Source: Mizuhopecten yessoensis (taxonomy: Eukaryota). From it: a stretch of DNA of 64,000 bases. How positions within the stretch are numbered: position 1 is the first letter of the stretch; each line of letters starts with the position of its first letter. This document shows, piece by piece, positions 12,156 to 62,634 of the stretch. The notes under the pieces are model-generated. The model ran no database searches. It saw only the letters and a list, made by a program, of their open reading frames with translations, and was not told the DNA's origin. The position numbers and the translations under genes were made by a program. The stretch is taken from contig NW_018408679.1 of NCBI RefSeq assembly GCF_002113885.1, positions 234,324 to 298,323 of the forward strand, given 5' to 3'.

Positions 12156-13280
12156 TCAGTGAAACGTAGACACGCGTCTGTTGTTGAGTACACGTGTTGA
12201 ATAGTAGGATTTACAATTCACAGAGTGAAATCCGTTTTGACTCGGATGATTCACTTCAAAACGAAAAAGTCTTCTTAAATTGTTTCTAAAATGTCTACTG
12301 AGGCAAACATATATCCAGAAATTAATCTGGTATGTTATAAATAAGCAAAAGTTAGATATGACGGCTATAACCAATTTCGCGTCGATTTTAATTATATTTA
12401 TGTCACAGACATCTATGAGAAACACAATACTCACTGGAATTTCTACTAGACAAAAGGTTACAACGATCAGAATCACCATTACCGTGGTTCTACGAATCAA
12501 CCGGAAGTCAGTTCTCTCCACTTCGTTGTCCTCTTCCCGGTGTAAGTCCAGTATCCGGTGGGATTCTACAATAAGTTTCTGGACCAGTGCGATAGTCGCG
12601 CACACTAGTATCACACATGGAAAGAATTGTCCGAAAACGAGGCGGATGAATTTCACAACTTTCTCTATACCGTAACCAAACATGAAGACTTCTTCTTGGT
12701 AACATAAACAATAAGGAATTACCAGACCGCTTTCGTCAATCCGAGTCCTCTCCTCAAAACGGTCTTCTAAAAACCACAAGGAGTAGACACCTAGAACCAA
12801 GATATACACCAGCAGTATTACTAAGATCGAGTTTTTATGTGACCAGAATCGTCTCCCTGGAATCGGAAATGCGACAACAATGAATCTCTGAATACCAAGT
12901 ACAACCGTCAGCCATATTGACACCGCGTGGAAAACGGCGGTAATTTTGTAAGCGATGCTGTGGTATATACACAACGGATACGGAAGTCCGTCTTGGTAGT
13001 TCAACACGTTACCCATACTGTAAAAGTATACATACATTGGCGTAATAACACTTGCCGCCAAAATATCACTGACGGCGAGAGCTGTGAGAAGTATGGTTGT
13101 CGGGGAGCGCATCCGGTTCATGGTAAAGACGATGGTGACAAGAATATTTGTACAAAGGGTTGTACAGGCAAGGAGGGGACAGAGAACACCGTACATAGGG
13201 AACCAATACGGGTACAATATCGGCAGGCAGTTCAACGAATTCTCCAGGAACGTCTCATTTGTAGAATTGATAAACACCAT
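12156..13280 (-). CDS. Intronless class A (rhodopsin-like) peptide GPCR, sex peptide/MIP/FMRFamide receptor-like, 374 aa
   Basis: Single long ORF; first in-frame ATG at 13280 (MVFINSTNETF; the ORF track starts at a GTG at 13322). Seven hydrophobic segments, N-terminal sequons NST and NET, RMRSPTTILLTALAVSD (TM2), SIWLTVVLGIQRFIVVAFP (TM3), TFCLVEIP (TM6), INFWIYVCLSRHFR (TM7/H8), Cys before TM3 and in ECL2. Confidence 0.93.
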   Translation of the reverse strand: MVFINSTNETFLENSLNCLPILYPYWFPMYGVLCPLLACTTLCTNILVTIVFTMNRMRSPTTILLTALAVSDILAASVITPMYVYFYSMGNVLNYQDGLPYPLCIYHSIAYKITAVFHAVSIWLTVVLGIQRFIVVAFPIPGRRFWSHKNSILVILLVYILVLGVYSLWFLEDRFEERTRIDESGLVIPYCLCYQEEVFMFGYGIEKVVKFIRLVFGQFFPCVILVCATIALVQKLIVESHRILDLHREEDNEVERTDFRLIRRTTVMVILIVVTFCLVEIPVSIVFLIDVCDINIIKIDAKLVIAVISNFCLFITYQINFWIYVCLSRHFRNNLRRLFRFEVNHPSQNGFHSVNCKSYYSTRVLNNRRVSTFH

Positions 13281-37915: not shown

Positions 37916-38830
37916 ATAAATGCGCCGGTCACAGTCAGCCCCAGTCCCAGTGAGGGCACATTCAGTTCGTCCCGGTACAGATATCGCAACAACAAATCCT
38001 TCGTCAACAAGTTTCATTTGTTCTGTGTTAACTTATCTGTAAACAGATATACAAACCTAATTCCGACAACCTGAAAAACATGTAAGGGATTGGTTATTGT
38101 AAGTGTCAGCCGATAATTTCAGTGCTTTGTTGCTGATGATAAATAAGTATTTCGTCCTGTTGTATTTCATTACTAAAAACCGTCTAAAGCGTACGTACCA
38201 CAAATCGTTGCTAATTTGTGTATTGATTGCAAAAATATCCAAAGCTGCATGTCTTCGCCCACCAACTAAAAACCAGAATAAATTGCATCCATAGGGCTAT
38301 GAACGCAATTCGATCTGCGTCATTTGACGCTTCAATTACTTCAAATTACGTGTCACCAACGTAAAAAGCAAACATTAGGACTACGTAAAGCTACCAATAA
38401 CTGTAAATTTAGAATGTCCATTCCCTAAATCAGAATTGTTTTCATTGAACTATTATAAAGCTAGGGGGAAATAAAGACATCACCGAGAAATGCAATTTGT
38501 TTTCTGTATGTTTATTTTAGTTGTGATTTTTAACATATAAATTGTAAAATCAAAAGACTTTTCAAATATTATTTCCATCATTCTGGTTGCTCCTAAGCAT
38601 ACAGAAAATAATAACTGTTATACAAAGTTATAATCACTCTGAAGGATCTTGTTACGTGTTGTCGGTCGATCTCACAACCCCGTCCACGATTATTTAAAAC
38701 TAATGAAAAGTAATTAATAATGATTTTTATTGTGCTCCTTTTCTTCATGCTGATACAAATATTGATTTATAGATCGATATTGGCTATTCCCATGACGTAA
38801 GCCTCCACTGGACAGAGAACTAGTAACACT

Positions 38831-38969
38831 TCAGAAAAACGGTTTATAGCATATCTTCTCGGATCTGTCAGAGCTCTTGATGGCGCTGAACACAGACATG
38901 AAGAGTGTTGGAAATTTGGACAGGAAGTATTTGCAGGGTTCGTCCAGTACGTCTCGCGCTTCTTCAGAC
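38831..38969 (-). CDS. RNase L/IRE1-like gene terminal coding exon (SEEARDVLDEPCKYFLSKFPTLFMSVFSAIKSSDRSEKICYKPFF*)
   Basis: ttttctacttgtcag acceptor, phase 2 matches the previous donor, TGA at 38833-38831; YF..KFP.L motif closes the KEN domain; minus-strand AATAAA about 100 nt downstream (near 38726-38731). Confidence 0.9.
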
Positions 38970-41900: not shown

Positions 41901-44900
41901 CTTTTGACGTCGCTTGCAACGTCATAATTTCTAACGTTACTTTTAAGATTGATACCGGCGGGTAACATATGTATATTAATTTTAACTGCTTATTTCTGGC
42001 TTCACTCCAGAAGTTAGGGTTAGGGTTTGAGCATGAGTGTAAAGGGTTAAGTCATACACAAATACTGAAATGTAAAACAAATAGGGTTCCATATGACCAT
42101 GGTACAAATAATACTTCTGTACTTTTGAACTTTGAAGACTAACATCTCTACAGTTTTCTACCGGTTATAGCTGTGACAAAAATATGTTTACGACAAAATC
42201 TTGAATCAGTATTCACAAATCTATACCACTTTGTAATGACCATGACATACATGAAATAAAATAGAGATTTGACGTTGCAAGCGTGGTCACTGTCTTTTAC
42301 GTCGCAACTTTGAATGTCAGTCATGCCCAGCTCAACGAGTTTTTAATGTATTGAAGAGATAATATCTAAAAAATGCAACGAAGAAAACAAATCAAGAAAA
42401 TCATGGCTTTCTGTGTTACGGATTAATTGCAATTTTTATTTCTCTTTAGCGTATATATTCTTACGACACTTTGGTCAAAACTCGTACAGGAATTAAAGAT
42501 AAACTTTATTTATTTTACAACAATATGAAACAACATATTTCAGCTTATATATTATTTTAAATTTTTTTTGGGGGGGGGGGTTATTGGAGGAAACTGGGTA
42601 CCCAGAGAAAACCAACGGGATCGGGCAGGTGACCCTATATCTGTTCCCGTCTGGTTGGGGAATTGAACCCCGGCCGCCTTGGTGAAAGGCAAGTGCGCTA
42701 TCCACTTCACCATCCAACCACTCAGTACAGTATAATCATGTGTAATAAGTATTTGACCATTCTATTTTAGTTGAATATGCTGGTATACTTAGCCTCAGAC
42801 TTTCCCCATGTAAATATTGGAGGTTGATGAGGTCACTTGTTCCAACAGTACCATTTTTCATTTGAATGAAAAAGTTAAAAATCTTGCTGTTTTAATTTAG
42901 TGATTGTTTTTCTCAAAAATTTGTTAAACATCATTTTCAGAAAACAAAACAGTCAGTTTAGTTAAGGCACAGAATATGTTTTTCCTGTATTCAATACTGG
43001 TTTTTTTTTGTAGATAATAAATAACTGTTCATTTCTCATCAATTTATTGGCCAAGGAAAATTTCAATACTCAAATCACATCACTGCACATTTTGGCCTCA
43101 CCTTCTACCTCCAGTAAACACTTTGACATGATGAAAACCCTAGAAAACTTGTACATCCACAGAAAGACCGTCCTTAGGCCAGTACAAATGGACTGAATAT
43201 ATAGTCACTTAAATGCACTATTAGTCTAAAAAGTAGATTTTAAACACAGTATGTCATCATTCCTTTGTTTGGATAGATCACCAATATGCGCTTAATTACA
43301 TCTAGTGTAGGCAGAGAAGGTCCCTGGCCTTTATCACCACTTTCTAGAAAACCTTCAGGAATGGCTTTGCCTATCATAACTGGTCTCACATCAGTCTCCT
43401 CCCCGCCAAGTGCAGGTTTCACTTTTAGTTCCCCTAAAATGAACATTTAATATACATATCAACAGAAAGTATATGCATTAAAAACCAATTTATATATACC
43501 TGGTATATAAATATCAGTTTGAAGTGCGCTCCGGGCGCGGGTCGCATATTTCCCGCATATTATAGAGGGCCGGAGTTCTGACGTTAATCGACGACAGACC
43601 GATATTAAAAAAGTCGATAAAACGTCAGAATAATTCGGACTAGATTTCAGGGGGCTAAATTACCGAGTTACCGTGGGGTATTTAAGTTTTATGAGCATGA
43701 ACCTCTCGGCGTGTCACATATGTCTACATGTAAGTAGGACTTCGACCGTATAGCTGAATACGACCAGCCCGGATCATATTGCTGCATAAACATTGATTCA
43801 CTGACATGCTGTTGTGCATGTGATGGTATAATCAATTACGTTAACAATGAGACCTCTATATTACTTTATATTAAACAAGATGGTGCCCCTAAAAAGTTCA
43901 GTTTATGCATAATCTATGGCAAAATAACAAAAGAAAAGTTTGATGAATTGATATTTGATATGAAATCCATTACTATCTCGCTAAAGATTGATGAGTCGTA
44001 TAGAACACGTATAGAGACATATTGGTCAGAAAAGATTTTACCAACGATCAAGCGCGAGGGTGTTTTACAAAAAAGATTGAAAAACAACAATTGCAAATCA
44101 ATGAATCACATGCTCAAGTTTCAAACTTATGAAATTCCCGATCGAATTCAGGGTTTATGTACTTTATACTATTCATCAGTCTCAATACTATGATTTACCA
44201 CGTAATAAAAATTAAGTCTAAGCTCGTGCATGGTGTACGTAGAAAAATGAGTTCCCGAGCTTTTTCAGCATGCAACAATCGCAATACCTTTGATGGTCGT
44301 TGGTACCAGTGCCTATGAACTGGCCGCGCACGCGCAAAATTTCCAGCTTAGTTGTCTTGCGGGAATTGTCAACATTTGATAAAGCTCTAAAAGTTAAAAG
44401 TTCCCAAAACATGTGTGCTAGAAAACCGACTTTTGTTTTTACTTCTACGAATGATATGTTAACAATACCGCAGGAATCGCTAAAAATATGAAAAAACAGA
44501 CGGTATTAAGCATTAAGCTTTATTAAAAGTTATTTTTTATCTTATTTTTATTTATAAGTCTACAAATAAAAACGCAGTTTTTATATGTTTTAAAACACAT
44601 TACATATATATAGTCACACGAACATATATTACGGACAAAGAGTCCGTAGCGGTCTGATAACTTCTACAAAGAATGGAACTGGAAAAAAATCATCCATGGA
44701 ACTGAAATAAAATCATCCATTATGATGAGGAAAACAACAAATAATAAAACAAACAAAATGCTAAACCAGTGTTTACACACCAATATAATCCGGAGTGGCC
44801 GTGTTCAGCTATGCGAAGTCCTTATATATGTGTGCACACATGTGTGTAGTCCGAATTATTCTGACGTTTTATCGACTTTTTTAATATCGGTCTGTTGTCG

Positions 44901-47900
44901 ATTAACGTCAGAACTCCGGCCCTCTATAATATGCGGGAAATATGCGACCCGCGCCCGGAGCGCACTTCAAACTGATACTTTAGAAACAAATCGTCACTTT
45001 CATACACATGTCCCACATGGATCGAAAGATCTATTCTTTATACACTAGGTGGTATCAATAACATGTTTCAAAAAACATTACGAAAAGTATTTTCCAACGT
45101 TTTCTATACCAACCCATTTTTTTAATGGAAATTAGGCCATGAGCAATGTCACATGACTTGACGAGATCTCGAAATACCAACATTATGACGTAGGCCGGCG
45201 AGATTTTAGTCATGTGACATTAGAAGGCGGGGCTACCAAAAAACTAGAGTAAAACAGAGTAAGTTTGAAGAAATATGTTTTTAGTGATTGTATTGGTTGA
45301 GGCATGCTATGTATGTTCATCTTGTACATAAAGAACAGAGCTTTCGATCCATGTGCGACATGTGTGTGAAAGTGACGATTTGTTTCTAAAATATCAGTTT
45401 GAAGTGCGCTCCGGGCGCGGGTCGCATATTTACCGCATATTATAGAGGGCCGGAGTTCTGACGTTAATCGACGACAGACCGGTATGAAAAAAGTCGATAA
45501 AACTTCAGAATAATTCGGATTAACATGTGTGATACGCTGTAAATTTTCATACTTTTACATGTACATCGTAAAATTTATCTCACGATAACTCTGTCAATGT
45601 TTTCAAATATCAAACTGAAATTTGGTATAAAAGTGTGTTATAGCACGGAATTATCTAAGTCCGTGGTTATAGTCATATGAATAACATATCGTCTGATGTT
45701 GCTTACTTTTATAAAAAAAAAAATAGGGATATAGTTTGAAGACGCTTCACGATCTGCGGAGTTCAATTCGCACACGTGTTCCACGACGCCAATCGTAAAA
45801 AATAAATTCACCATAACTCGGTCGTTTTTTCATATATCTACCTAAAATTTGGAGTATATATCAATAAAAGTCTTATTCATAACATATCCTCTGATGTCGC
45901 TTACTTTAGTAAGAGTTTTTAAAGATATTGTCTAGTGACGCTTTCTTAACTTTACAGGTTATTACACACACTTGCCACGCCGCAGATCGTAAAATTCAAT
46001 TCATCATAACTCGGTCAATTTTTTAAATATCAAATTGAAATTTGATATAAAGGTGTATTATAGTCATATTAACAACAAATCTTCTGATGTCGCTTACTTT
46101 ATTCGGTATTTTTATAGTTTTTGTCTGGCGACATTTGTCGCTTTCTATTCATTAAAAGCATTTGGTCATTTATCTCATTATACAATAAAAAATACACATA
46201 TTTTTCTTAATGTTTACATACCTCATATTTTACAGCATGTTTTTCTTTCTTCTGGGTGTTCCCTAGCTGCGGTAACGTAGCTTTCTGACGACGACATTTT
46301 TTTAATCGGGGCAGAGGAGGCCGGGTATTAATATTAGTATTAAGTGTTCCCATGCATCCGAAGAACTGCATCAAAAATGCGTCCTTACATCCTCGACATG
46401 ACTTGTCGATTGACTTATTTGTGTTTTGAAACTGCAAGTCACATTGTATAAATGTAGACGTGCAAGTTAGCCTGCACCCCCTTGTCCCACACGCCAGAAC
46501 TTGGCCAACATTTAGCACGATTACTAGCCGAAGAAACGGGAAAGAAGTGACTGAACAGATCGTCTAGCTCTGCAGCGATCACACTATCACATAAATTCAT
46601 ATACTTTAAATTGGGTGGAAGATAGGCTGCTACATCTCACAAGTTTAAACGCAGCCACTGTGTCTGTCATCTTCCATAGCGAATGTAAACAATCTACCGG
46701 AAGTGTGAGCACCAGAAAACGGAAATCCCTGTCGCTTGGATATTTAAGTCAATTTGATTAATTATTGATATCTAAAGTGTATGATATTGTTTGAATAATT
46801 AAGAGATAGCTTTCTAGTTTCAGTAGTTACATTATATGTATATGTTTTGTGAATAATACAAGTTATATAGTACATTTTTGTAAAACAAGTGAGATTTCCG
46901 TTTCCGCGCGAAACAGAAATAGAATAGAAATATGACGTCTGTCGGAATTCCCGTTTTTCTCCCTTTTCATTAGCTAGAAGTTAAGGACCCAAATCCCAGC
47001 CGGCGGCTCAATTATATATTTTCCAGTTTTGTCTTCGTTTCATTTGCCACACTGACACGTATCAAAATGGAAATATTTCATTATTAACAAAGCCGTCTAT
47101 GTAAAAACGTTAAGTTGGTTCAGTTTTATAGCGGTCTTAATACAAAATTGAATCATTATCTGTAACTACAGAATTACGCCGGTATATAATAACCGGTGTA
47201 AAGTTGTGTGGATTAACCACACTTGACACAGTTCGGTATAAAACACAGGTTAATACACGGCCTACAGACACAGCTGATTGGGTTAAATGCTCACCTAACA
47301 CGATATGCGCATTTTGATTATACTTATAATAGACTGCATACACTGCCGAGCACGTCCTCTCCAAACAGTAGGCACAATCGTCTGGCTGTATCATTATCTT
47401 GTCAGGATCTATATTGGATTTAATTATGTACGAGCTAAAAGTTCCAATTTTTAGTAGCGACAAATCGATATCACCAAGGTTTTTATTAAAACGTGACAAC
47501 CACATTTATTAGCTCTCCAGTCGTTGCCAACTTGATTGAAAATAGAGACATTTTATCTACAGTGACAAACACATGAAAGGTTATAAAAGAATGAGTTCTG
47601 GCAACTTTAATTTCGTATCTTTTCCTGTCGATATTACGTATTAATACCATGCCTATATGGTATGTGAATGGCTAATGTTAAATTTTTGCACGATCAAGTT
47701 TTGTCAGGTCCTGAGCGTAAACTATTAGTTTTCTTTGTTTTAACATGTAAAACCACATCAAAGTTACTATGATATTATCTTTAAACTTTGAAGATATGTT
47801 CTACTGAAAGCCTTTTGTCTGTTTTAGCGAAGCAAATCTTTTGAATCTTACTTTTAGAATATCAATACACAGAAATATAACAGGGGGTGTTCTAGGAAGT

Positions 47901-50900
47901 TTGGTTATGTACTGTTTTTATGTAAAAAATAAAATAAAAAACGTTTCCTCTGAAAATTAACAACGTTTATACCTATGTATGTACAAACAACTCATTGAAT
48001 ACATTTTACTCGATCTAAAACTGATTTAATGACACTGGCAGGTAATATTGTCGCCATAAGCCCAGTTTATAAAACTCGTAGCTCTAAAATAAGGCGTTTG
48101 TTATTTGTATAGAACCCCATGTATTATTTCAGTGTACATCTTACACTGTACTTATAATCACATGAAGCTGTAAGTTTATATATGTACCTACCAAATTTAT
48201 TAAAACCACGCTGAAATGAGTCTTAAAATTTATAATAAATTTATAATAAATGAAAAACATTTAACGTTGGCAATGTATGGGCATGGCATAAAATACTGCA
48301 TAGTGGCTTTTTTGGAGCATCTACATAAAGCTTATTCAAGTACAAAACGAGAAAGATAAACTATCCCCTGTATCATCCATGCGTGTGAAATTAGGTAATT
48401 CCTTTAGATGTGTCAAGATCTGGTTATATTTGGAGAGATGCTGTTTCAGCTGGTTAAACTTAAACGCATCGAATGTGTGTTCTTTTGGTGGTTCTTAACT
48501 TTTAATTTCATCATCAACCAGCATTACAACAGTATTACTTGTCATACTTGCCGTTGCTGCCCAGTACCATACTGTGTAGGAAATATTAACGTTGTCTGGC
48601 TTTCTGCGTTGAGGTACTCAACATTTTACCACCACCACCACCACCACCATTAAGTAGAATTAAAACAGGGAAATTTGTCAATATTACAATCCAGTCTCAT
48701 TAAAACGAACTGAAATATCTCGATTAATATTGGTTGTGTGGCACTTCATTGTCATATACTCATCATCTCGACCTTGACGTACAGTTCAATGTTAATTATT
48801 TGACTAGAATATGTGGGAAATCCGGCTCATCCTGACCACGACACAGAGGCAATCGCAACGTATCCTTAACAGAATAGATTTTGTTCATCTTGACTTCAAA
48901 ATAAAAAAAAAGCTATATTTTTATAAACCAGAATATGTGGAACTTCGACATCACGAGGCTTAAATATACTTACATTTTTTCGAAGTGGAGACAGCAGTTG
49001 TAAACGAAAAGGACCAGCTCCACTAGAGTGTTCTTGTACTGACGGAACGACCGCATCTCCTTCATGATTACTGGGTCAACCTGTGACATCTACAGAGAAA
49101 CAGGCGTTCAGCATCTACACATTGCAATAGTAGTAGTTACAATATTTGTAAAGCACCCTTCCAGTTGATAGATACAAAAGAACATCTTAAAGTGCAACAT
49201 TTATTGAGATAAAAATATGACCACATAAAAACAGCACACGATCCTCATGCTGATTTGCCCGAAACGTTCCGTAGGCGATGATGCATCTTTTCAAAACAGA
49301 CGGTAAGGCGACAGACTGCGACCCAAGTGTTTTTGTTGTATGTGCTCCCCTATCCTTCACTATCACGGTACACAACACCGAAACAGAACGTTTGAGGCGT
49401 CAAATAACAAGTACATCATCAAATACAAACGATACCATCACATTCACATACAGCAGCTATTTACACATGAAATCCCCTACTAAAGTACATATAATGCTAA
49501 AGGGCAGATCCCTTACAAGAACAGTTATTTCAAATTAAATCTGTGTTGTTTCATCGTCATCGATATGAAATTTTGAACATTTCGGGCCTGCAATTAAATG
49601 TTACTAGCGTTCGGTCGCAGAACATTTCTACAGACTGTATAACACAAAACAAGCATGCGTACACTCTAGCACGAATTTCTGTTTCTATATACTACCCTAT
49701 ACAAATATACGGTGTATATATAGTGGATAGTTCATACATTATAATATTATCTCCTCCTGTTTCACCTCAACCACGAAAACCACCAATGCACATTCCCATG
49801 AAGGTGTTATAGAATATTTTGTGCTGATAATAAGAAGGGCCAAAACCCGCAGTTTTAAGAATGTTTTTGGCAGTACTGTATTTGCGTTTCGGATTTCTGT
49901 GAAAGTAATACAAATTGATCACATTTATCGTGACTAAAAGGTTAATTGATGATACTACTGCAAAAACACAATATGTAAAATATGATTCCTATCAATATTT
50001 AATATCAAAATGTAAGTACATAAGATCATGTTTACATGCTTACCCAATCGTTTGCGTCACAGCCGACTGCATTGATGATGTCGATCATGGTGCCGCCCGT
50101 ACCACCGAAGGTTGGAACTCTGAAATAAAGAAAAAAAAACACTCGTTATGCCTACTGATACAAAACATAACGACATCATTTTAATCCGGGGAAATTATAT
50201 CATGTTTTCAGTTTATTTGAAATATTGGAAAAAAAATACTTGAATGCGTCATTAAGGAAATGACGTCTAATACATAATGAGACCAGAAGAAAATCACTGT
50301 ATATCACACGATTTGTTCATTGATGGAATTCAAAGTAAAACATTTTGGATTTTTTGGAATTTCAGTTTTTCTCCTAAATAGGAAAAACATTTGTTGGCTT
50401 GTTCAAATACAACGATTTCCTAAATACGAAAATAGCGAAATGACGAGATAATTAAACCCAATTTGAGTTGTTACCTTAATTAGAACAATGAATTTCCGAT
50501 AACAAGGAAGCCCACTGTTCGATAAATGATATCACTAGCACTTTTCACCGTTATCAACCGTAAGAATCTCATAAGAGGATATTATAACATAGCTAATTGC
50601 AGAGTTTTATGCTATCGGTACACTTACCCCAGTTTCATGTCCCGGAGAACGTCCGAGCCAGCGATAAGAACAAACCGAAGGCGCTTCTCGTTCGCCCAGA
50701 AATAAGGATGTCTGTAACCAATGTTAAAGCCAGGAGTTATATCTAAAACCTTATCCAACCATGAATGTTATAAGTTTGTTTCAGGTTCACACACTCCAAC
50801 GCTCTCGATACGTTTTCAACACTTACCTGAAGTATACCAATATTACGATGTTGTGTTTTGTTTTGACCTTTACGTAAGCATTGAAACTACATAATCATGT

Positions 50901-53900
50901 TGTCAGTAACTCCATATTTTCTATTCTATAACATTTTCCGTTATGTTATCACGTTTCTTTAGGGGCAACAGTAAACATGTAGCGTCCAAAAGTCGTTGCT
51001 TGCATTGTTTTCTTTAGACTTATACATTCATCTTATTTATTTGCTAGTTATCAAACAAAACTTGTGATTCTTTCTTTTGTATCTTGTGCTTAAAATATAT
51101 TGAATAGACCAACACTGGTATGTTGACGCCTTTGTAAAACTTGTGATATTTCCTTTCTCCGTATGCATTAGCTTTCTGATGAGTCTCTTGTTATATGACA
51201 TGATGTGTCAAACTAATATCTTTTTAAGGTGACTTACTTGAGCAGATCCCCTACGCAAGATCGGTTTTGCGGTGGCATACAAAGCATGTTAGACAGCAAA
51301 TCGTGGATCTCGTCGCCGAGGTATTTGATGTCCGGCCAGTTTTGGTGGATGCCGACCTGAATCGCGAGGTTGTTTTCTCCATACGGGTGGTTCCCTCCGG
51401 TCATGATGTAGTACGACAACATACCAGTCACCTGCAATGAGACACAAACGCACAGCAGACGCACCACCGCGCCAACGTACGAGGACATTTATTATAAGGT
51501 GTTTGCAAGCAAGTATTTTAAACTCGAAAAGATCAAGGAATCAGAATGAAATACCGGGACAATACCGTACTATCTATACTTTATACTCAGCAATCAATCA
51601 GTTTATATATACAGTCTGTAACAAACACCTGATTAACATTTAACAAGATACTATTTGTTTAATCTATGATATTATTTGGTGAACCATGATCGTGTATGTG
51701 TTATGAAATAGTTTTTAATTGCTTATCATTTACCAACATCAAAGCTGCAGAAAAATTTCCAAATCAAGTTTCAATTGGCATATATTTTAAAATGACACAT
51801 TGAGAGCAGCTTCATGTGTGAAAAGATTGACAGTATTAACTCAGTTATTTTGCTGTTGTTGTGGTTGCCATGGATATAGATGTCCGGAACTAAGACGTCC
51901 ATACACCTGCGATCCAGTTGTTCCCCGAATCCACAGCACAACTGCAACGAAATCAACTCGGAAGAGAAGACAATCAGAAACGACAAAACAAATGTGTACT
52001 CTAATTTAATTATTATTCGGGCTGTCTGATAAATGAAGATGAGGCGGTAGCCACATTGATTCGGCATTTTATTGGATTATAGGTACAACACCATGTCAGT
52101 CTGTTAATACACAGTAGGAAGCATTCAAACACAAACAAACAAAATATGTTAAATAGAGTTTTTCTTTTTAAAGACCTCGCTTTTTGTGAAAGTATCACAT
52201 ATCATGAAATATTTTATTTCAAAGTGTTGTAACAGTGGTTTATCTTGTAGATTAACAAATCAACAAACGCTGACGAAAGTCCCGATTTATTTCATTGTTC
52301 ATGCTCTGTCACTTCAAGAACATAGTATGTGAAAACAGCCTATTTGTGGAACTGGTCATACTGATAGTTCATGGGTAATATCCTTACAGTGTATTATTAC
52401 TATGAATAAACTCTTAGCTGCGTCCAGCATTTATGAAAATTACACTTATTTTGATGAACATCTTCTTGTAGTTCAAACAAGAACAACACAATGCTTCCTG
52501 ATAGATATTTCAAAGGCTTATCCCTAACCTACTTTGGTGGTTTCCGCCTCTACCATTAGCTAGCAAAAAGCTATACGCTAATTGTTCTGAAGCATGAGAA
52601 GCATACAGATACACATTACCAGTGTGTGAGATTGGATGACAACAACAATAATTGAATTTAGATCGCGTGATAAGTAAGACCATAAATGTACGTAATGGAT
52701 GCCGTGTAGATTGTATAACCAGGTTACCGTTGTGATGGACAAACTTTGCCCGACGTACCGTACCTATTGGATCGCATCGCTTTGTTCGTGAAGATGACAT
52801 TCATCAGCATTAGTTTAATGCCAATTACGAAAGTGTTAATAAGTGAATTTGACTATCAACTAGCCTAGGTGATAACAATAAAACTTGTTAGATACTTTAT
52901 CTTTACTTGGAATACAGAAGTATCAAATATTGATTATGTAAGGTGTTTCAAACAATAAACAGTAATTGAGTACATAACCAAACATCATTTGATTGTCGTT
53001 CTACTGTTCCCTATCAATTGCTCCCATATGTATAGGTTGGGATCATGCAAATCGTTCTTAACGAAAGAGGAATTGTAGACATAAATGTTTCAAATTGAAG
53101 CAGACCGCTATTTTACCTTGGAATGAAGACCACACCTAGTGTGAGACGTCAGACGATCATGGTATACCCTGGGTAAAGATGTGCTGGTAGATTTAACATG
53201 TACAAAGTAATCATATCCTGTGAAAGGATATATTGGTAAGTCTAAAGTGTAGGACATATTTGTCAGTTCAGCCTAAGATGTATGGCCATACGACTTTTTC
53301 ATATGCAGAGGCTAAAGATAAAAAAAAGTCTACCTGTGGGGTTTTCAAATTGAGCTAAACACGAAATTTGACAAGATTTTTTGCCCCATTTTTGAAATCC
53401 CTACACTACAACCGAAGAGTATTTTTCTATAATTCTTGTCGCTAGAATTACCTCTGAAACCTTGATAAGGTGTTTGGATCTGTTCATATTTGTAAAATAT
53501 TAACCATTGCTTTATGCTTTTTGAACAAAACGAAATGGTCAGCGAGATTTAGTATACGGCATTCCACCAAAAGTTCCACCTTTTTTCTAACTACTCCGAT
53601 TAATAAATTATTTTAGTTTTGGATTTCATTACGGAGGCAGTTTCCACATCGCTGCATCAGAGTTTCCAAATTTTGTGGCGTCCACCTGTGTCATCACGCA
53701 CATAAAAAAGACGTTACAAAATGTCCTACACATCTTTATTGCCCAGAACTATTCTATCATACACGCAAAGGAATGAGAGAAATATATGCATACCTAAGAA
53801 ACGTAAAACATCGTTTAAACATGTAGAAGTCGGGTACGTCATACATGTCAGGCAATTACATTACGTAAGGAAATATCTATAAGTCGAGTTAAGAAGCTAG

Positions 53901-56900
53901 ACATGTGTATATGTCGGGTTAAGTGTAAGGTGTAAGACAGAGGATAAAGAAACAGTAATACGTAGGAGACGTAACACAATACCTGTATGTCAGACTGTTT
54001 GCTGTAGTTTCCGGATTCAGTCACGATTTCTGTTGGTATCCAGCAGTATCGGTCAGCTGGAATAAAAACTCCAAAGTCATTTCGACAAATAAAACAAGGC
54101 AAATACAGAAAAGTAAACTAAGCCGTGATTTGAACTCAAAATATATGAAATTAGGGCAAATTATGGACAAAAGAGGTATATTAAAAAGTAAAAGAATGAT
54201 AACATAATGTGTTCCAGAAGTAAAAGAGTCTTTTGCATCATCGAAAACACCCAGCATGTAAATCTAGATAAAATCCAAGACATGTCATGCCCTCAAAAGG
54301 AGAACCAGGGAAGTGACAACAAAAGTTCACGGCACAATACCGGCATGATCAAAAATATCGATTTTCATATAGCACATCGAATCATGATGCCGACCAAAGG
54401 CCCCATAGTCAACCTGCATATCTCTAAACCGTGTGTTATTACTTTGTCCGTCAGCATTTGACACCTATCCAAGAAATTGTGATATTCGGAGCAAGCCCGT
54501 GGATATCGAATCAAACTTCACCATGCACACATATAAGTTGGGGAAGAAGAATTGATACTATCATGAAAGAAAAGGTTCCCGGTATCAACATCAAACTTTC
54601 CACTACTATCATATAGCTTGTAAACCATCACTGCTGGTCATGTAAAGATCCACGTATGCGGATGATGCTGAATAGTTTGTAGGGTCAGTGATTTCAAGTT
54701 CAAGAAGGTCAATATTTTAACGTGGTCACTGCATTCCTGGAAGATTATTATAATTTTTAAGGAATGTCTGCTACGATTTTCATATTATATAAATACTACT
54801 GATATTAATTTTGAAGGAATATAATAATTTATTAAAAAAAAAATCATTGGTCAATTGATAAGCGTCCGGAATAAGTTTTGGAAAAGCCTTGGAACTTTCT
54901 TCATATGTAAATATACTGCGCTAAAAAAACGTATCTTGTAGTTGCGACCAGTGCCTCTAAAAGATAACCATAACACAATGACATTCTGTCTAATGAAAAC
55001 ATCTTAAGTTGGTATGGCTCTTCAGTCAAGAAAATCACCAGCATGCAACTTCATTTTTATTTGAATATTACCTGAGGGTAAGACCCAATATGTCACTTGA
55101 GAAATTGCTGCGAGTCTCTAACTTGGAAGTTTTCCAAAATTTTACATTTTTTGCGTTGGCCCGAAAAATACTAATGGCAATTAATATGGGGAAAATAGCC
55201 TCAATATCATTTAACAATCACGAAATGACAATGATGGAAATATCACCTAAGTTATAGGCGTTTTCCTCGTTGAAAAAAATAATATCAATAAAATTCGTTA
55301 AAATTGTCGTGTTTTGCCCCGTATTTTAATTTGATCCCTGAGCGATAAACACTGATGCTTTATGGTACTAAACAGGCATGTCACTGAGAACCGTAAGTTC
55401 TGATTATTTCATTTTTCAGCATTACAGTGCAATAACAACAAGATTTTACTGATGTACTAATTTGGCCACGAACAGGCAGTTAAACAAAATATATTATATT
55501 TTTACTGGTGAAATATCGGGAAATGTTTTCAGTAGAGTGAGAAAATTATAAGATTTTTTATTGGTAACTTTCTCCGATTTAAACCGATGAAAAAGAAGAA
55601 CACAAAAATAATTAATATAACCGTATAGCTTAAAATGTTCTTGTTCGGCATTGGTATTGTGACGTCATCACAGGTCGACGTCATAAAAAAAAACTTTCAG
55701 GAAACAGAATATTTAATGATCTTGCGTTATAACTATTTACATTTCTCGGGTGCGGAAGAATACTTCAATCAATATGTTTTTGTGCTGGTGCAAAATATTA
55801 AAACAGTCTGCCATACACGTGAAATATGTATGGTATTCAAAGAGAAACGTTATCAAATATCCTCTTTTATATTTTATCCTGATCCATGAACTGGTTGTAT
55901 TGACTCCCAACGCGCTACCAGCAAAATCATAACCTTTTAGGTTCAGTATTTGTGTGATAACACGATGACCTAAATTATTCGTAAATGTTTAAAATCATGC
56001 AAAAGTACACATTCAATCTGTATCACTTGTGAAAACCTAAAAACTAGTTTACTAGGATTCAACCGTTCACTGATATTTACAATTTAATTACACCAAATAC
56101 AAATATTTGATTTATTAATTGAAATATAAATATGCAAGACCACACACTTGTGTTTTTCTAACGAATCAGAAAGCACGAGTGTATTGCGCGGACGAATATA
56201 TTCATGAGTGCGCGGAGCTTTTATCACATACCTTCCGTATAAGGTAGAAATCGATACAAAGATTTTATAACTTTGATATTTTTTGCAAATACCGGGAACT
56301 TTTCAGTTCTCCATGACAAGGAGATTCTCATAAAAAGTAGGTCCGGCTAGTAGGTAAATACAACATTCCGTATTCCGTCTTTGGGTATTGCGGAGTTATC
56401 TTCTCTTGTGAGCAGGGATTGATTGTTACGTCATTGGTTTGTGTGAGAAAATTATGTCGTTTTCTCAAAATTTGATGACGTAACTCTCACAAACCAATGA
56501 TGTAACAATCAATACCTGCTCACAAGAGAAGATAACTCTGCAATACGCAAAGACGGAATAGCACATGTGCAATACAGAACGTTGTATTTCATGGTCTGAA
56601 AATTGCTTGTATTACATACTTACTAATAAATACGGTTTTTTTTGTATATGCGATACGACACAATATTAGTTACACGGATTTTTGGCAGGGTATACGGGAT
56701 GGTATGACCATAAAGGGTTTCGTATTTCCTGAGGCCGATAGGCCGAAAGAAATACGAAATCCTGTAGGGTCATACCATCCCGTATACCCTGCCAAAAATC
56801 CGTGTAACTAATATTGTGTCGTATCGCATATACAAAAAAAACCGTATTTATTAGTAAGTATGTAATACAAGCAATTTTCAGACCATGAAATACAACGTTC

Positions 56901-59900
56901 TGTATTGCACATGTGCTANACAGTATGCGAAGCGAAACGTTTTGCCATTTTGTAAACTTGCCCCGCCGCAAGATACAAAGACAGGTGATTGTAAAATCAC
57001 GTGATTCCACCGTATTACTGCTGAGAATCACGTGACATGACCGTATACCCCCTGAGATTGTCGTTTAACCCCTGAGATTTACGAATGCGGGTTGGTACAC
57101 TGTAGTTTTTAACCAATCAGATTCCTAGATTTTTCTCAAAGGGGTAATAATTGCTCTTACCCATATCAGCCTTCGCCGTATCACACCCCAACAGCCGTAT
57201 CAGCCCCCGCCGTATCACACCCAAAAACCCGTATCAGCCCGCAAAACCCGTATCACACCCCTTTTGGATTTTTTTTTCGTTTTTCAATATTTCAAAAGAA
57301 AAAAAATATCAAAAGATAGTAGCTTTTAGTAAGTATGTAATAAACAGAATAAAACATGACTTTTTCCATATCACACCCAGAATCAACCCTCGACTAATAT
57401 CAGCCCTAGGGCCTTCGGCCCTTGGGCTGATATTGCAGTCTCGGGTTGATACTGGGTGTGATATGGAAAAAGGCATGTATTATTCTCTATGTATTACTAT
57501 AACAAGATTCAACAGGTATGTGGTAAATGGTAGTACTACATAGTATATAAAAGCTGACTGCTTGGCTCTTGTTTCTGTAGAGAGGAGGGAGGGATCGGTT
57601 AAAGGAAGTAAGCTATAAGTGATACGTTAAATGAGGTGTTTTAACACGTAAATATTATATCCTGAAAAATAACTAGGCGGACATCATAATAAACAAACAC
57701 AAATGAGGTAAGTAGGATGGAAATAATAAGAACATACATTGATAGCCTGTCATACTATTGCCAGTAATTCTTTTTCGTTTTTGACGAGCAAACACATTGA
57801 CACTTTGGCCAGAGGTTTACCGCCTAAATACCTGCATTAACATTTGCAGGTGCATCAAGTAAGGACACTTAAAACATAACATGGTATATGTGTTGAAAGC
57901 ACGTCATTAACTAAGTATTGTTATTTGAAGCGTTTGGATGAATTTGATGTATGGAATAAGATATAAGAGTGATCTTATAAAGCAACTGGTTCAGATTCCA
58001 GTCACATGTGATGATGACACTGCTAGAAAACACACGGCTAGCTTGATAACAGTTTTTTTTATGCGTAACTGAAATTAATCGTTCTAACGCTTACGTCGTC
58101 TCTGAGAAATGTGACGGCGAAAACTAATTGACTAGTCGTACAGACGAGATTAAAATCATCCATATAAAGGGCAATAACTCTGCAAAAAAACACACAGGAC
58201 AAGTATTTCTGATATGAAGTGTACACAAGTAAAACATAAAATCGTTAGAGAAAGCAATAAGCATCGCAATAATTTTACCTGACATTGGAGAGGTTGGGAA
58301 TAAGGCGCGAGCAGTGCCACCTAGTGTGGGAAGGGAGTACTCGCTCAAACACAGCTTCTCCTCGACATCCACAAGAACGTTACTTGGCTGTACAGATAAA
58401 ACAAACCAAACGGATTTAAAATGTCTGTTTAGTATGAATAATTTAACTTACACACAGTAAATATTTACAAACTAAGACATACGGCTTCTTAGACAAAATA
58501 CGTGGCATATTCCACCTCCATCAGTTCAGGCATAACTTAAAGGGAACATCAACGTTGATCAAAGTATCTGGGATGTTATCCTAATATTTCGGTCCGTGTT
58601 ATAAGGTGCTATATAGCCTCACTTTCAGCTGTTTCCAAATGTCATTTAAACAAATTATGTCAGTATATTATCGGTAGAAAACCACTTAGGGCGCATAAGA
58701 TCAAGAGAGGTCTCACGACGATCGTTCGGGAACAACAGAAATAGAAACCTGATTCAGAAACATTCGTTTATAATCATAACACGACACACATATACAGGAC
58801 CTCGCCTCACCATTATGTTTCCATGTATCATGTCAAAGCTGTCGTGTAGAGACGCCATGCCCTTGAGTATCTGCCAGGTCATCTTGTTGATGGTTAATGG
58901 GTCAAGGTTGATGTCCATCTGTTGCAGGGCCAAATACTCGGACAAGTTGTACTCGTGCAGGTCCATGGCCAGGTAGCACGTGCCTGACTCGATAATGAAG
59001 GCCTACAATGATACAAGCAAATGGCATGTGATCATAATCCTAAATGTGTACCAAGTGGCTAATACATTATGATCACCGTGTCTAACTAGCGGCGTCCACA
59101 TACCATATCACTGTCTCTTTTAACACAAGTAAGTACGTTCTTAGAATTTTTCACGGTAACTTTATTTAAACCTGTCATGTCGGTTTTACAAAGCTGGTAT
59201 ATCAGTAAAGCGAAGAATAAAATCGAGAGAAAAAAAGGTAGAAAAAGTTCCTTTCCACAACATGAAACACTGCCTTTTGGTAGGACAGTTTCTATACACT
59301 GTATATGTATATAATGAAAATTTCTTAAACAAAAATGAGTTTATTCATTTGAGACATTTCAACACGGTTATTTCACCTTACTCAGAAAAACATAACAGCA
59401 TTGAAAGGTCAAGCATGCCTTGCCCATGAAAAAAGAAAGGTAATAAATAATTCAAAGAATATATAGAAAACAAGACATAATATTTCCCTGTGATATGTTT
59501 TGCAATGTTCTGACGTGCCCGTGTCACAAATCGCCGCAGGAAAATGTTTGTGAGATAACCGAAAAGAAACAAAAAGTCAAAGTCAACACATATACAAAGT
59601 CTGAAAGGAAACGTTAGGAAACCCAGGTTAATTAATGAATTGTCTATTCCGTCTTTGCGTATTGCAGAGTTATCTTCTATTGGGAGCAGGTATTGATTGT
59701 TACGTCCTTGGTTTGTGTGGGAAAATTACGTCGTTTTCTCAAAAATTGATGACGTTACTCTCACAAGCAAATGACGTTACAATCAATACCTGCTCACAAG
59801 AGCAGATAACTCTGCAATACGAAAAGACGGAATTGCAAACCTAGTAACAATAAACAGCTAGTAAAAGACACGGACAACGTGGTGATTAGGAAAGATCTCA

Positions 59901-62634
59901 ACAGGTAATACACCAAGAAAGTCATCTGTATAGACAATTGTGTGTCCTTTTTTGTAACACACGATTCGGAGGCCCTTGTGTCGCCAGTCTAATATGACCT
60001 GTTAATACTCACTTGGTTTGTTTTGTTTTACGTCCTATCTATCAGTGATCGTTGACGGCCAGACGCTATAACGACTCAGCTACCGCGGCCTGCGTTTTTA
60101 CTCAAACCGGCACCAACTTCACCATATTAATCGGTCAAATGACCTCCATCATAGATACACCGCGTATACTTAGTTTTGTGGTAACCATCGTAAGTTACGC
60201 ACAAATAACTAAAAAAAAGGACGGCGATCATTTTCGTCCATCATATTGTTTTCAACCAAAACTGAACTGACATAAATCCTAAAAGTTTGATTTGAAATTT
60301 AACATCTTCCGACAAAAGGTGATTGGGACGTCATAATTTCTTGTTACCATGACGACATCGTTTTGATTCTGTCTGGGTGTAAACTGACATACTCTATGGA
60401 AAGACAGAGAACTTATTTTTGAAGAGGTAAATTGGGAGACAGTTCAGTGAAAGGAGGGAGAGATCGTGACTCCCAAGGGGAGTGTATACATGTATGTACC
60501 AGGAGACAGCATGAACACACAAGGGGAGTGTATACATGTATGTACCAGGAGAAATCGTTACCACCCAAGGGGAGTGTATACATGTGAGTACCAGGAGAAA
60601 TCGTGACCACCCAAGGGGAGTGTATACATGTATGTACCAGGAGAAATCGTCACCACCCAAGGGGAGTGTATACATGTATATACCAGGAGAAATCGTGACC
60701 CCCAAGGGGAGTGTATACATGTATGTACCAGGAGAAATCGTTACCACCCAAGGGGAGTGTATACATGTATGTACCAGGAGACAGCATGGCCACCCAAGGG
60801 GAGTGTACACATGTATGTACTAGTAGAAATCGTGACCACCCAAGGGGAGTGTATACAAGTATGTACCAGGAGAAATCGTTACCACCCAAGGGGAGGGTAT
60901 ACATGTATGTACCAGGAGACAGCATGGCCACCCAAGGGGAGTGTACACATGTATGTACTAGGAGAAATCGTGACCACCCAAGGGGAGGGTATACATGTAT
61001 GTACTAGGAGAAATCGTGACCACCCAAGGGGAGTGTATACATGTATGTACCAGGAAAGATCGTGACCACCCAAGGGGAGTGTATACATGTATGTACTAGT
61101 AGAAATCGTGGCCACCCAAGGGGAGTGTATACATGTATGTACCAGGAGAGATCGTGACCACCCAAGGGGAGTGTATACATGTATGTACTAGTAGAAGTCG
61201 TGGCCACCCAAGGGGAGTGTATACATGTATGTACCAGGAAAAATCGTGACCACCCAAGGGGAGTGTATCATGTATGTACTAGTAGAAATCGTGACCACCC
61301 AAGGGGAGTGTATACATGTATGTACCAGGAGAGATCGTGACCCCCAAGGGGAGTGTATACATGTATGTACCAGGATAAATCGTCACCACCCAAGGGGAGT
61401 GTATACATGTATGTACCAGGAGACAGCATGAACATTCGAGGATGTAAGTGTTTATTCATGAGAAATACTTTTTGTTGCATCGGTGACGATGTTATAAAAA
61501 TGGTTAAATTACACTGACTTTAATTTGAAATTTGCTTTGCTTGCTAATGTCACCATTAAAAACTTAAAACGCCGTTTTTCGACTTCTTGAAGAAGTTTTT
61601 GTTCATCTATGTTGGCTTCTTAAAGGAGAAGTAGGATGACAATGAGGCCTAGATCGAGTTAGTTATAGAGTCGTAACAACACTTAAGCAATCCAACCAGT
61701 TATTCTGATAATCATTCTTCTTACTTATCTTAATGAGTTCCAATAGACAGGTATTCGTGATTTTGTATGCGTAAGACAGAGTGAAATTGGAGGATATATT
61801 TGTGTGTTTGGGGTCTTGGCATGCACGGCTAAATGACACCCTATAAAAGGGAGCGCTAAGCACATAACGATGAGTTTGCATCATTGAAGAATGCCAGACA
61901 CGCTAATGAGGCTATGATCGCGATTCGAGTCTCCAAATCAATACCAGCACAATTAAAAGGTAAAAATATTGACGAATCTCTTAACGACAAAATGAAGGGG
62001 AAATCAATGTACTCCTTCAATGGTGCTACGAGGCGGTGGCCATGTGACATGGAGACTAAAATCGTGTACCGGAACTCGCGCTCTTCTCACGCTATCGAAA
62101 AGCTACATTTGTATTAGATATGACAGAGAGCAGCAGGCTGTAGTGAGGTTCACGAAAACATATGTATTACACAGAGATGTAATCTGGATTCTCCAATATT
62201 AATGAAAATATGAAAGAAGACAAAAATAGTTGCCAAATGGACGGCCTTCGCTTTATGGTCAGATGATAATAAATGCTAACAAAGCTAAAATGCAGTTGAT
62301 ATTCTTGCTTATTTGTTTTATTTTCTTCTATTTCACAAAAGAAAATAAGAATTACTCGGGAAATAGGATAAATTTACAGGAAACAAACATCCATGTTTCC
62401 CTCGTGCATAATGAAAACATGTGTAATATCACCTGTATAGATCTACTGACAGCACCCACAAACCTCACACCGCAACAGGTACTTACCCGGTACTTCACAA
62501 GGAAATAATGACAGAAGTCCGGTGATGTCAGTTTCTGTAACATGGACTCTGTGACTGGTCGACTAGACAGCTCAATGACGTGAACCGCCACCTCCGTTCC
62601 GTCCATCAGAAGCCCCAGTACCGCCGGGCTGTCC
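38831..62634 (-). CDS. RNase L/IRE1-like pseudokinase-KEN ribonuclease domain protein, 3' part (9 exons in window, 5'-incomplete)
   Basis: Manually spliced minus-strand exons 62487-62634, 58811-59002, 58279-58387, 53983-54056, 51238-51431, 50628-50711, 50044-50119, 48974-49089, 38831-38969. All have AG acceptors; the eight non-terminal exons have GT donors with matching phases (0,0,1,0,2,2,0,2). Joined frame is open: ...LGLLMDGTEVAVH...YLAMDLHEYNLSEY...QILKGMASLH...IHGNIMPSNVLVD...CWIPTE...SDIQVTGMLSYYIMTGGNHPYG...HPYFWANEKRLRF...DWMSQVD...RQYKNTLVELVLFVYNCCLHF...KYFLSKFPTLFMSVF...YKPFF*. Kinase-fold subdomains followed by HPxFW and YF..xFP.L motifs are the IRE1/RNase L architecture. Confidence 0.9.
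39730..39903. repeat. Hairpin element with an internal duplication
   Basis: CTTTTGTGCT..AATATGATGTGATATGAA paired with TTCATATCACATCATATT..AGCACAAAAG; GAATATGATGTGATATGAACCTGAA occurs twice (39753, 39798). Confidence 0.75.
40354..40620. mobile_element. Harbinger-like MITE, about 265 bp
   Basis: Imperfect TIRs GGACCCGCATTCATGA and TCATGAATACGGGCCC in a CTG...CAG context. Confidence 0.62.
42586..42720 (-). mobile_element. tRNA-derived SINE (V-SINE-like), best-preserved copy
   Basis: Minus strand shows A-box-like TGGTGAAGTGG, anticodon-like GCCTTTCACC, B-box GGTTCAATTCC, then GGTTTTCTCTGGGTACCCAGTTTCCTCC. Confidence 0.78.
43510..43642. mobile_element. Solo terminal inverted repeat of the Mutator-like foldback element at 44847-45522
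   Basis: About 130 bp near-identical to 45390-45522 and to the reverse complement of 44847-44978; ends in the same terminus AATAATTCGGACTA. Confidence 0.85.
43915..44130 (+). pseudogene. Mutator-like (MULE) DDE transposase remnant
   Basis: YWSEKILPTIKREGVLQKRLKNNNCKSMNHMLK resembles the MULE motif TNNxxESxNxxLK that carries the catalytic Glu (here Lys); surrounding frames are broken. Confidence 0.55.
44847..45522. mobile_element. Mutator-like foldback MITE, 676 bp, with perfect 9 bp TSD
   Basis: About 200 bp high-identity inverted arms starting TAGTCCGAATTATTCTGACG, weaker symmetry inside; ACATGTGTG duplicated at 44838-44846 and 45523-45531. Confidence 0.9.
45560..46330 (+). mobile_element. 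HINE-like element with three degenerate units of about 200-230 bp
   Basis: ATAACTC(G/T)GTC...ATATC...AAATTTG...CTGATGT(C/T)GCTTACTTT recurs at about 45585, 45813 and 46007. Confidence 0.55.
48974..49089 (-). CDS. RNase L/IRE1-like gene exon: KEN active-site helix (MSQVDPVIMKEMRSFRQYKNTLVELVLFVYNCCLHFEK)
   Basis: tttctctgtag acceptor, AT|gtaagt donor, 116 nt; aligns by eye with RNase L YQNTVGDLLKFIRNLGEH and IRE1 [25 protein letters not shown]. Confidence 0.9.
50044..50119 (-). CDS. RNase L/IRE1-like gene exon: GVPTFGGTGGTMIDIINAVGCDANDW
   Basis: Strong polypyrimidine tttttttttctttatttcag acceptor, TGG|gtaagc donor, 76 nt, phase 2 to 0; ends on the conserved KEN 'DW'. Confidence 0.85.
50628..50711 (-). 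CDS. RNase L/IRE1-like gene exon: HPYFWANEKRLRFVLIAGSDVLRDMKL (kinase/KEN junction)
   Basis: ttacag acceptor, GG|gtaagt donor, 84 nt, phase 2/2; HPxFW motif marks the start of the KEN domain. Confidence 0.92.
51238..51431 (-). CDS. RNase L/IRE1-like gene exon: VTGMLSYYIMTGGNHPYGE...DLLK
   Basis: ttgcag acceptor, AA|gtaagt donor, 194 nt; YY.xTGG.HP.G is characteristic of the IRE1/RNase L C-lobe. Confidence 0.92.
53244..53737. mobile_element. About 490 bp MITE (Kolobok-like, inferred)
   Basis: TAAAGTGTAGGACAT at the left and ATGTCCTACACATCTTTA at the right. Confidence 0.5.
53983..54056 (-). CDS. RNase L/IRE1-like gene exon: DRYCWIPTEIVTESGNYSKQSDIQ
   Basis: tttttattccag acceptor, CAG|gtattg donor, 74 nt, phase 1 to 0; APE-equivalent (W-I-P-T-E) and start of helix F (SDI). 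Confidence 0.88.
54370..54715 (-). pseudogene. Penelope-like retroelement reverse transcriptase C-terminal fossil
   Basis: Minus-strand translation with one frameshift and a stop: LELEITDPTNYSASSAYVDL / KLYDSSGKFD...SSPTY..*SLIRYPRACSEYHNFLDRCQMLTDKVITHG. This parallels the Penelope-like consensus ELEIKDTT..SASYLDL..LYDKRDDF..SPAYGVYISQLIRYARACS..DFL.R...LT.KL..QG. Confidence 0.75.
56371..56560. mobile_element. 190 bp foldback MITE, copy 1 (TA termini)
   Basis: TATTCCGTCTTTG..TATTGC.GAGTTATCTTCTCTTGTGAGCAGG paired with CCTGCTCACAAGAGAAGATAACTCTGCAATACGCAAAGACGGAATA; second copy at 59645. Confidence 0.88.
56559..56918. repeat. 360 bp palindrome with perfect outer arms, ending at an N
   Basis: 56559 to about 56709 is the exact reverse complement of about 56768-56918; mismatches occur only in the central 60 bp or so. 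Confidence 0.9.
57160..57490. mobile_element. Hairpin element with CCGTATCA(C/G) short repeats, TAGTAAGTATGTAATAAA motif and a terminal hairpin of about 145 bp
   Basis: CCGTATCACACCC/CCGTATCAGCCC repeats at 57176-57260; motif at 57327-57344; TTTTTCCATATCACACCCAG pairs with CTGGGTGTGATATGGAAAAA around GGCCTTCGGCC. Confidence 0.7.
58279..58387 (-). CDS. RNase L/IRE1-like gene exon: PSNVLVDVEEKLCLSEYSLPTLGG...PMS
   Basis: gtacag acceptor, G|gtaaaa donor, 109 nt; completes the catalytic loop (HGNIMPSNVL); the DFG position reads EYS. Confidence 0.88.
58811..59002 (-). CDS. RNase L/IRE1-like gene exon: hinge, helix E, start of catalytic loop (AFIIESGTCYLAMDLHEYNL...IHGNIM)
   Basis: cattgtag acceptor, gtgagg donor, 192 nt, phase 0/0; YLAMDLHEYNL resembles YIALELCxxTL; QILKGMASLH is helix E. 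Confidence 0.9.
59645..59834. mobile_element. 190 bp foldback MITE, copy 2
   Basis: Highly similar over its full length to 56371-56560, same long TIRs. Confidence 0.88.
60460..61432. repeat. 46 bp intronic minisatellite, about 21 copies
   Basis: Unit CCAAGGGGAGTGTATACATGTATGTACCAGGAGAAATCGTGACCAC; explains the many overlapping repetitive ORFs here. Confidence 0.95.
62487..62634 (-). CDS. RNase L/IRE1-like gene exon: kinase N-lobe (DSPAVLGLLMDGTEVAVHVIELSS...HYFLVKYR)
   Basis: Donor CGG|gtaagt at 62487. Acceptor tttgttacag at 62635 chosen; alternative acceptors in the same open frame would start the exon at 62668 or 62717, so the 5' boundary is uncertain. DGTEVAV matches the beta3 region of RNase L/IRE1-like kinases. 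Confidence 0.75.

Follow-up and report, generated by a model that had tools for sequence, protein, structure and literature searches.

What would trigger a KEN-domain protein in a mollusc? The question is raised by a 64,000-bp stretch of the Mizuhopecten yessoensis genome (contig NW_018408679.1, positions 234,324 to 298,323; this whole stretch is named here the window), whose minus strand encodes, from position 62634 down to 38831, a kinase-fold domain followed by a KEN domain. The characterised KEN nucleases respond to two triggers, unfolded protein for IRE1 and 2′,5′-oligoadenylate (2-5A) for RNase L. The original prediction, made from the DNA letters alone, proposed a hidden RNase L-like gene that could serve an invertebrate 2-5A/OAS-type or other RNA-targeting defence system. 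By its sequence the gene is a distant relative of RNase L and belongs to the RNase L lineage, although the tests that define RNase L and IRE1 place it in neither of them. Its altered KEN active site is combined with motifs of the ribosome-docking type, a combination previously unreported. On balance, sequence comparison tips slightly towards a cytosolic RNA effector of the RNase L lineage that would be docked on the 40S subunit and gated by dimerisation. A role at stalled ribosomes is more likely than the one of a classic 2-5A antiviral nuclease, and the likely function is translation surveillance or a stress response.

A mollusc gene that is conserved, annotated and uncharacterised has its 3′ end in the window. 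Residues 1414-1789 of XP_021371290.1 (M. yessoensis LOC110461892) match the window translation at 100% identity, which also confirmed the bivalve origin deduced beforehand. RefSeq and GenBank models exist for LOC110461892, one of the latter (OWF41823) being named IRE2, so that the gene is not hidden, contrary to what had been proposed. A splice-site scan of the minus strand from 62634 down to 38831 recovered the nine small in-phase exons of the original prediction, separated by eight introns that all have GT-AG borders (8/8) and compatible phases throughout. The spliced open reading frame has 376 codons followed by a stop codon, and no internal stop. The GC content at third codon positions of the coding join is 0.65 versus a GC content of 0.36 for the window. 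Databases were queried with single exons and then with database proteins by their id, the joined protein being used for the phase check and for comparison. Exon-by-exon Pfam searches, a check proposed from the outset, gave weak Pkinase matches for exons 2 and 5 and Ribonuc_2-5A matches for exon 8 (E value 0.043) and exon 9 (E 6.5e-5). The features of the gene in the window are:

62487..62634, minus strand: exon 1 in the window, kinase N-lobe in which the Gly-rich loop is absent and the beta-3 Lys is replaced by His (protein residues ~1414-1462)
58811..59002, minus strand: exon 2, hinge, helices D-E, and catalytic loop with HGN where HRD is expected
58279..58387, minus strand: exon 3, catalytic-loop Asn, EYS where DFG is expected, and an activation segment of low confidence
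53983..54056, minus strand: exon 4, APE-equivalent and start of helix F
51238..51431, minus strand: exon 5, kinase C-lobe; the sole exon used for the database query that retrieved relatives
50628..50711, minus strand: exon 6, kinase-KEN junction (HPYFW) and first KEN helix
50044..50119, minus strand: exon 7, region of KEN helix 2
48974..49089, minus strand: exon 8, KEN active site and invariant F-R-x-Y RNA-binding segment, with the codons of Tyr1723 (49038-49036), Tyr1735 (49002-49000), Asn1736 (48999-48997) and His1740 (48987-48985)
38831..38969, minus strand: exon 9, final KEN helices and stop codon
48495..48603, minus strand: alternative last exon of RefSeq isoform X2, truncating KEN just past the catalytic His

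AATAAA sequences are found downstream of exon 9 at 38731 and 38516. The product of isoform X2 could be a non-functional or dominant-negative form. In the GenBank model OWF41823 the conserved C-terminal FF-stop is swapped for two extra exons (34263-34222 and 29850-29767, minus strand), one of which sits in a tandem repeat; they are probably a prediction artefact.

Exon 5 alone retrieved relatives of 1,600-2,000 amino acids (aa) from scallop, mussel, oyster, limpet, abalone and snail genomes, and the gene appears to be single-copy in bivalves and gastropods. The nine exons align end to end and without gaps on an intron-free 5,473-nt contig of an Argopecten-type orthologue; all junctions are thus supported in a close relative. 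The transcript support sought in M. yessoensis RNA is thin: a single read pair, present in one of four runs and absent from the other three, has a depth pattern that fits the exon 5-6 splice, but no junction reached the three-read threshold in these runs. Read-pair depth bins also fit a read that connects a weak donor at 51841 with the acceptor of exon 5; the cryptic exon thus suggested at ~51869-51841 (minus strand) is deduced from one read. No published study of this mollusc family was found in the literature searched, whose coverage leaves out most subscription journals; the tree of Chu et al. 2023 may include unnamed members from molluscs.

The complete XP_021371290.1 protein is composed of ~six ankyrin repeats (residues ~70-250), a helical domain (~255-455), a basic coiled coil (~456-500), a linker, a pre-kinase helix, the pseudokinase and KEN. 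The ~860-aa linker is disordered and poorly conserved, with 9-16% identity outside scallops. The N-terminus, which the original prediction expected to define the sensor, is thus of the ankyrin and not of the luminal/membrane type. The full protein was found to have neither a signal peptide nor a luminal domain, nor any conserved membrane helix; its one hydrophobic helix, near residue 339, belongs to the helical domain, which is folded, and does not show the conservation of a membrane span. When the N-terminus was used for fold searches, the matches were generic ankyrin proteins and the RNase L sensor domain ranked 11 (Z score 24.5 versus 27.5 for the top match), a result that is not diagnostic. 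The helical domain and the conserved linker block had no match in the ESM Atlas, and mollusc and fish helical domains have no sequence homology beyond the ankyrin repeats. A further conserved linker block (residues ~1120-1235, encoded outside the window) features an invariant F-P-x-F-H-D core and has no Pfam or Atlas match. KEN is the best conserved domain, at 51-96% identity versus 27-81% for the kinase (one gapped Pomacea model omitted). The ratio of non-synonymous to synonymous substitution rates (dN/dS) between two scallops is 0.015 for KEN versus 0.11 for the kinase, rough values because dS is near saturation. The structure model folds as one kinase-KEN unit (predicted local distance difference test, pLDDT, 88), whose fold comparison gave Z 34.8 for IRE1 (24% identity) and Z 27 for RNase L. 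The KEN fold is present according to Pfam, the structure model and the fold comparison.

To which lineage does this kinase-KEN unit belong? Scored as a whole it is nearer to IRE1 (88 bits versus 55 for RNase L), and fast evolution of RNase L could explain this result. A KEN profile searched against the PDB had pig RNase L as its top match (57.9 bits), with human RNase L at 49.4 and IRE1 at 49, and it aligns the RNase L active site gap-free. A W-x3-S-x2-W-x3-L helix, conserved in molluscs, is found ahead of the kinase. Its profile, built from mollusc, fish and cnidarian sequences and including no RNase L, retrieved pig RNase L (E 2e-6) and, second, human RNase L (E 1.2e-3) along the full element, while IRE1 was absent from the PDB matches at E 10. 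Only profiles succeeded: PDB searches with the pre-kinase segment and exon 8 as single sequences yielded nothing useful. As both the pre-kinase helix and the KEN profile match RNase L first, the lineage is RNase L-like, which is as far as the profiles go; on this point the original prediction was borne out.

The protein resembles RNase L (PDB 4o1o, 4oau) in the ankyrin-pseudokinase-KEN order, the pre-kinase helix, the ungapped Y/+12/N/H spacing and the P-x-x-Y-F sequence. It differs in having Tyr for R667, ~six ankyrin repeats instead of nine, and an insert of ~1,100 aa (helical domain, coiled coil, ribosome-type motifs). Furthermore, RNase L is under positive selection whereas the mollusc protein is strongly conserved. 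With IRE1 (PDB 6xdb, 4pl4) it shares the kinase-KEN fold, the F-R-x-Y-K RNA-binding segment and the catalytic His, Tyr and Asn, but it has no luminal or membrane domain, its kinase motifs are dead, the Arg905 equivalent is lost, and the active-site spacing is one residue shorter. A tree that included mollusc, scorpion and fish kinase-KEN proteins, with RNase L and IRE1 left out and cyclin-dependent kinases as the sole root, gave one molluscan clade that broadly tracks the species tree. A long-branch scorpion protein is its sister and the fish ankyrin-kinase-KEN proteins come next, with weak support. Chu et al. 2023 speak broadly of ankyrin-bearing homologues outside RNase L and read them as independent gains outside jawed vertebrates (PMC10400998).

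Fish and cnidarian kinase-KEN proteins have the pre-kinase helix in common with molluscs. Most of the other animal cytosolic kinase-KEN proteins keep the active-site Arg, none has the set of three linker motifs described below, and the fish ones retain HRD and DFG. In the teleosts Channa, Cebidichthys, Gadus and grass carp, kinase-KEN proteins that begin with ankyrin repeats or a CARD have intact kinase and KEN motifs. Of the RNase L-type helix ahead of the kinase, three of these proteins have the second Trp, and RNase L itself is said to be lost from this group. Stony-coral ankyrin-kinase-KEN proteins retain F-I-R-N and the His, and the scorpion ankyrin-pseudokinase-KEN protein has a degraded kinase and KEN site. 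The soft coral Xenia has more than 100 kinase-KEN paralogues, some in tandem, that also carry TPR, death, SH2 or zinc-finger domains. Their active sites are mostly intact, and the expansion is of the immune type.

The Gly loop, HRD and DFG of the kinase are lost across the molluscan family. None of the aligned molluscan members has the R of HRD or the D of DFG, the beta-3 Lys is kept in only 5 of 23, and the scallop protein has His for this Lys, HGN for HRD and EYS for DFG. In KEN, Tyr1723, Asn1736 and His1740 are invariant across molluscan members. The Y, +12, N+13, H+17 spacing initially noticed was confirmed but the catalytic set is not intact, the +12 residue, left unnamed in the original prediction, being Tyr and not Arg. 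The position of RNase L R667, aligned with RNase L FIRN, is occupied by Tyr (Tyr1735) in 22 of 22 molluscan KEN cores. The HEPN R-x4-6-H motif is absent from the scallop KEN, which reads Y-N-C-C-L-H. Non-molluscan relatives have Arg in 124 of 136 motif matches and Tyr in none. In Ire1, His and Tyr act as an acid-base pair and Asn and Arg grip the scissile phosphate (PMC3149027); RNase L R667A is nuclease-dead (PMC3973342). RNase T1, which holds the phosphate by a Tyr, makes a retuned nuclease possible for the Tyr1735 KEN. Its sequence leaves the chances about even between a slow, retuned nuclease and a non-cutting RNA clamp. Judging by its top conservation despite the loss of Arg, the site is retained for some function.

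The linker motifs lie upstream of the window and were read from the database protein. Three of them are fixed: W668-x-x-V followed by KK/RR, W734-A-D-x-V/A-K, and acidic-F771-P-x-L. All 23 sequences compared have both W668 and V671. The three motifs resemble those used by the human ribosome-collision sensor ZAK-alpha to dock on the ribosome, which were defined via cryo-EM and mutagenesis: the pin, in which W768-T-K-V771 binds eS27 and is followed by a basic ES7 patch; the RACK1-interacting helix (RIH), with Y611, V615 and R616; and the RACK1-interacting motif (RIM), FPxL, to which collision sensitivity is due (PMC12823453). The oyster pin-like motif, WTKV, is identical to ZAK W768-V771. Consensus sequences for RIH (S-aromatic-A-x-hydrophobic) and RIM appear in bioRxiv 2026.08.26.747346; an FPxL-type motif is common to SERBP1, LARP4 and RNF10, and RIH to LARP4, RNF10 and USP10. 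A census by sequence of 19 lineages (18 named genera and one further contig) found the pin-like motif with its basic patch in all 19, the RIH-like motif in 18 and FPxL in 17. All three were found in fixed order within 250 aa or less in 16 lineages, and the full set in none of the 145 non-molluscan proteins compared (mostly kinase-KEN). The parallel with ZAK-alpha is one of mode of action, not of homology: a disordered region that bears an eS27-pin-like, an RIH-like and an FPxL motif is joined to a domain that requires dimerisation. The mollusc protein differs by lacking the SAM domain and an active MAP3K, and by its pin-RIH-RIM order, the reverse of that in ZAK.

Several points weigh against ribosome docking. 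Shuffled sequences gave expectations of 0.28 (pin), 0.79 (RIH), 0.59 (FPxL) and 0.0 (all three), but the motif patterns were set after the alignment had been inspected and the sequences are related, so that these counts are not p-values and speak for conservation, not binding. Biomphalaria and Elysia lack FPxL and Solemya lacks RIH. Arg, not Ser, precedes the RIH aromatic residue in most members, the strict Ser being found only in Patella, Lottia and Sinanodonta. FPxL/F occurs anyway in about 6% of ribosome-fraction proteins, and acidic-W-x-x-V also fits the ATG8-binding motif. The motifs are ~600 aa from the kinase, whereas the ZAK RIM adjoins the dimerising SAM domain. Finally, LOC110461892 expression is very low in the four RNA runs.

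From the domains and motifs observed and their conservation we infer docking, dimerisation and an output on RNA. By analogy with ZAK-alpha, the three linker motifs quite probably tie the protein to the 40S subunit. W668-x-x-V and its basic patch would contact eS27 and nearby rRNA, while W734-A-D-x-V-K and F771-P-x-L would contact RACK1. The chances are roughly balanced that neighbouring or collided ribosomes then pair two copies, the pseudokinase forming the back-to-back dimer required by KEN domains. The ribosome would act as trigger in place of 2-5A or unfolded protein, and the KEN dimer would engage RNA at the ribosome with its His/Tyr acid-base pair, Asn and RNA-binding Arg segment, without the phosphate-stabilising Arg. 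A more specific proposal is conceivable, though doubtful: a mollusc endoribonuclease activated by ribosome collision, docked on RACK1/eS27 of adjacent ribosomes, dimerised by its pseudokinase, and cutting mRNA or rRNA with its Tyr-for-Arg KEN. RNase L would then be one branch of an old cytosolic ankyrin-kinase-KEN family, fish, coral and scorpion proteins included, with interchangeable triggers.

Among the other explanations, an innate-immune RNA effector or regulator that responds to another ligand through its ankyrin/helical N-terminus, ribosome docking being secondary, is unlikely but fares best. Its case rests on relatives of immune type (the >100 Xenia paralogues with TPR and other swapped domains, the carp CARD-kinase protein, the coral and fish ankyrin-kinase-KEN proteins) and on the induction by poly(I:C) of a Nematostella gene called RNase L. 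The molluscan clade, however, displays neither expansion nor domain swapping among the matches, and it is under strong purifying selection.

Somewhat less probable is a doubly dead enzyme, pseudokinase and pseudo-RNase, whose role would be that of a scaffold in autophagy or RNA granules, W-x-x-V being its ATG8-binding motif. The invariant Val followed by KK/RR fits the ZAK pin and ES7 patch better than an LC3-interacting region, in spite of the acidic residues that precede the Trp in most members, and two RACK1-type motifs co-occur with it. Both catalytic centres are degraded and HEPN domains devoid of the motif are thought to be RNA binders (PMC3710099), but the catalytic His, Tyr and Asn are retained in all members.

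The 2-5A-activated RNase put forward in the original prediction as effector of molluscan OAS lost most of its ground and is now improbable. The domain order is that of RNase L, which is also the first match of the pre-kinase helix and KEN profiles, and OAS without an RNase L partner is reported for Crassostrea and Lottia (PMC6307210). Nevertheless, the residue replaced by Tyr in all 22 KEN cores is the one whose mutation in R667A kills the nuclease. The 2-5A pocket of RNase L requires ankyrin repeats R2/R4 plus R9 and the kinase N-lobe (PMC5927464). With ~six repeats, the ninth absent, and a kinase ~1,100 aa distant, such a composite pocket cannot be assembled the way it is in RNase L. A conserved aromatic residue or Glu is missing from all repeats at the W60/F126/E131 positions, a residue-level mapping that is only a lead, and RNase L is not among the best 60 PDB sequence matches of the ankyrin region. 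OASb, the OAS group that reaches invertebrates, is not coupled to RNase L, vertebrate OASb genes having failed to activate it in yeast (PMC10400998). An apparently single-copy gene with KEN as its most conserved domain is also a poor fit to a fast-evolving 2-5A effector.

An IRE1/IRE2-type sensor of the unfolded-protein response, as the GenBank name of OWF41823 implies, is largely refuted and highly improbable: taken whole, the kinase-KEN unit has both a better sequence score and a better fold match with IRE1 than with RNase L, but the ankyrin N-terminus, the absence of signal peptide, luminal domain and conserved membrane helix, and the dead kinase motifs uphold the initial view that this is not the IRE1 orthologue, and primers for the scallop IRE1 of stress studies (XM_021515702.1) match neither the window nor the LOC110461892 protein, the true IRE1 appearing to be a different gene by this mismatch.

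The introns also contain palindromes resembling miniature inverted-repeat transposable elements and repeated inverted elements (56559-56918, 44835-45531, 43508-43642, 56371-56563, 59645-59837), and several minisatellite arrays are found in the window (e.g. 60457-61423). Elsewhere in it, at 12156-13322 (minus strand), an intronless gene codes for a 388-aa rhodopsin-family G protein-coupled receptor, which matches 7TM_GPCR_Srw best in Pfam (E 2e-21) and whose ligand is probably a peptide.

With these results, the gene is no longer an easy candidate for the target that OAS activates in invertebrates. The invariant replacement of Arg by Tyr in an otherwise frozen site provides a direct test of KEN chemistry. 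The common pre-kinase helix is a marker for revisiting the origin of RNase L, for which the current view (PMC10400998) is that of independent ankyrin gains outside jawed vertebrates. If the proposed mechanism is true, the ribosome would be a third KEN trigger, and the fields of ribotoxic stress and RNase L would be linked.
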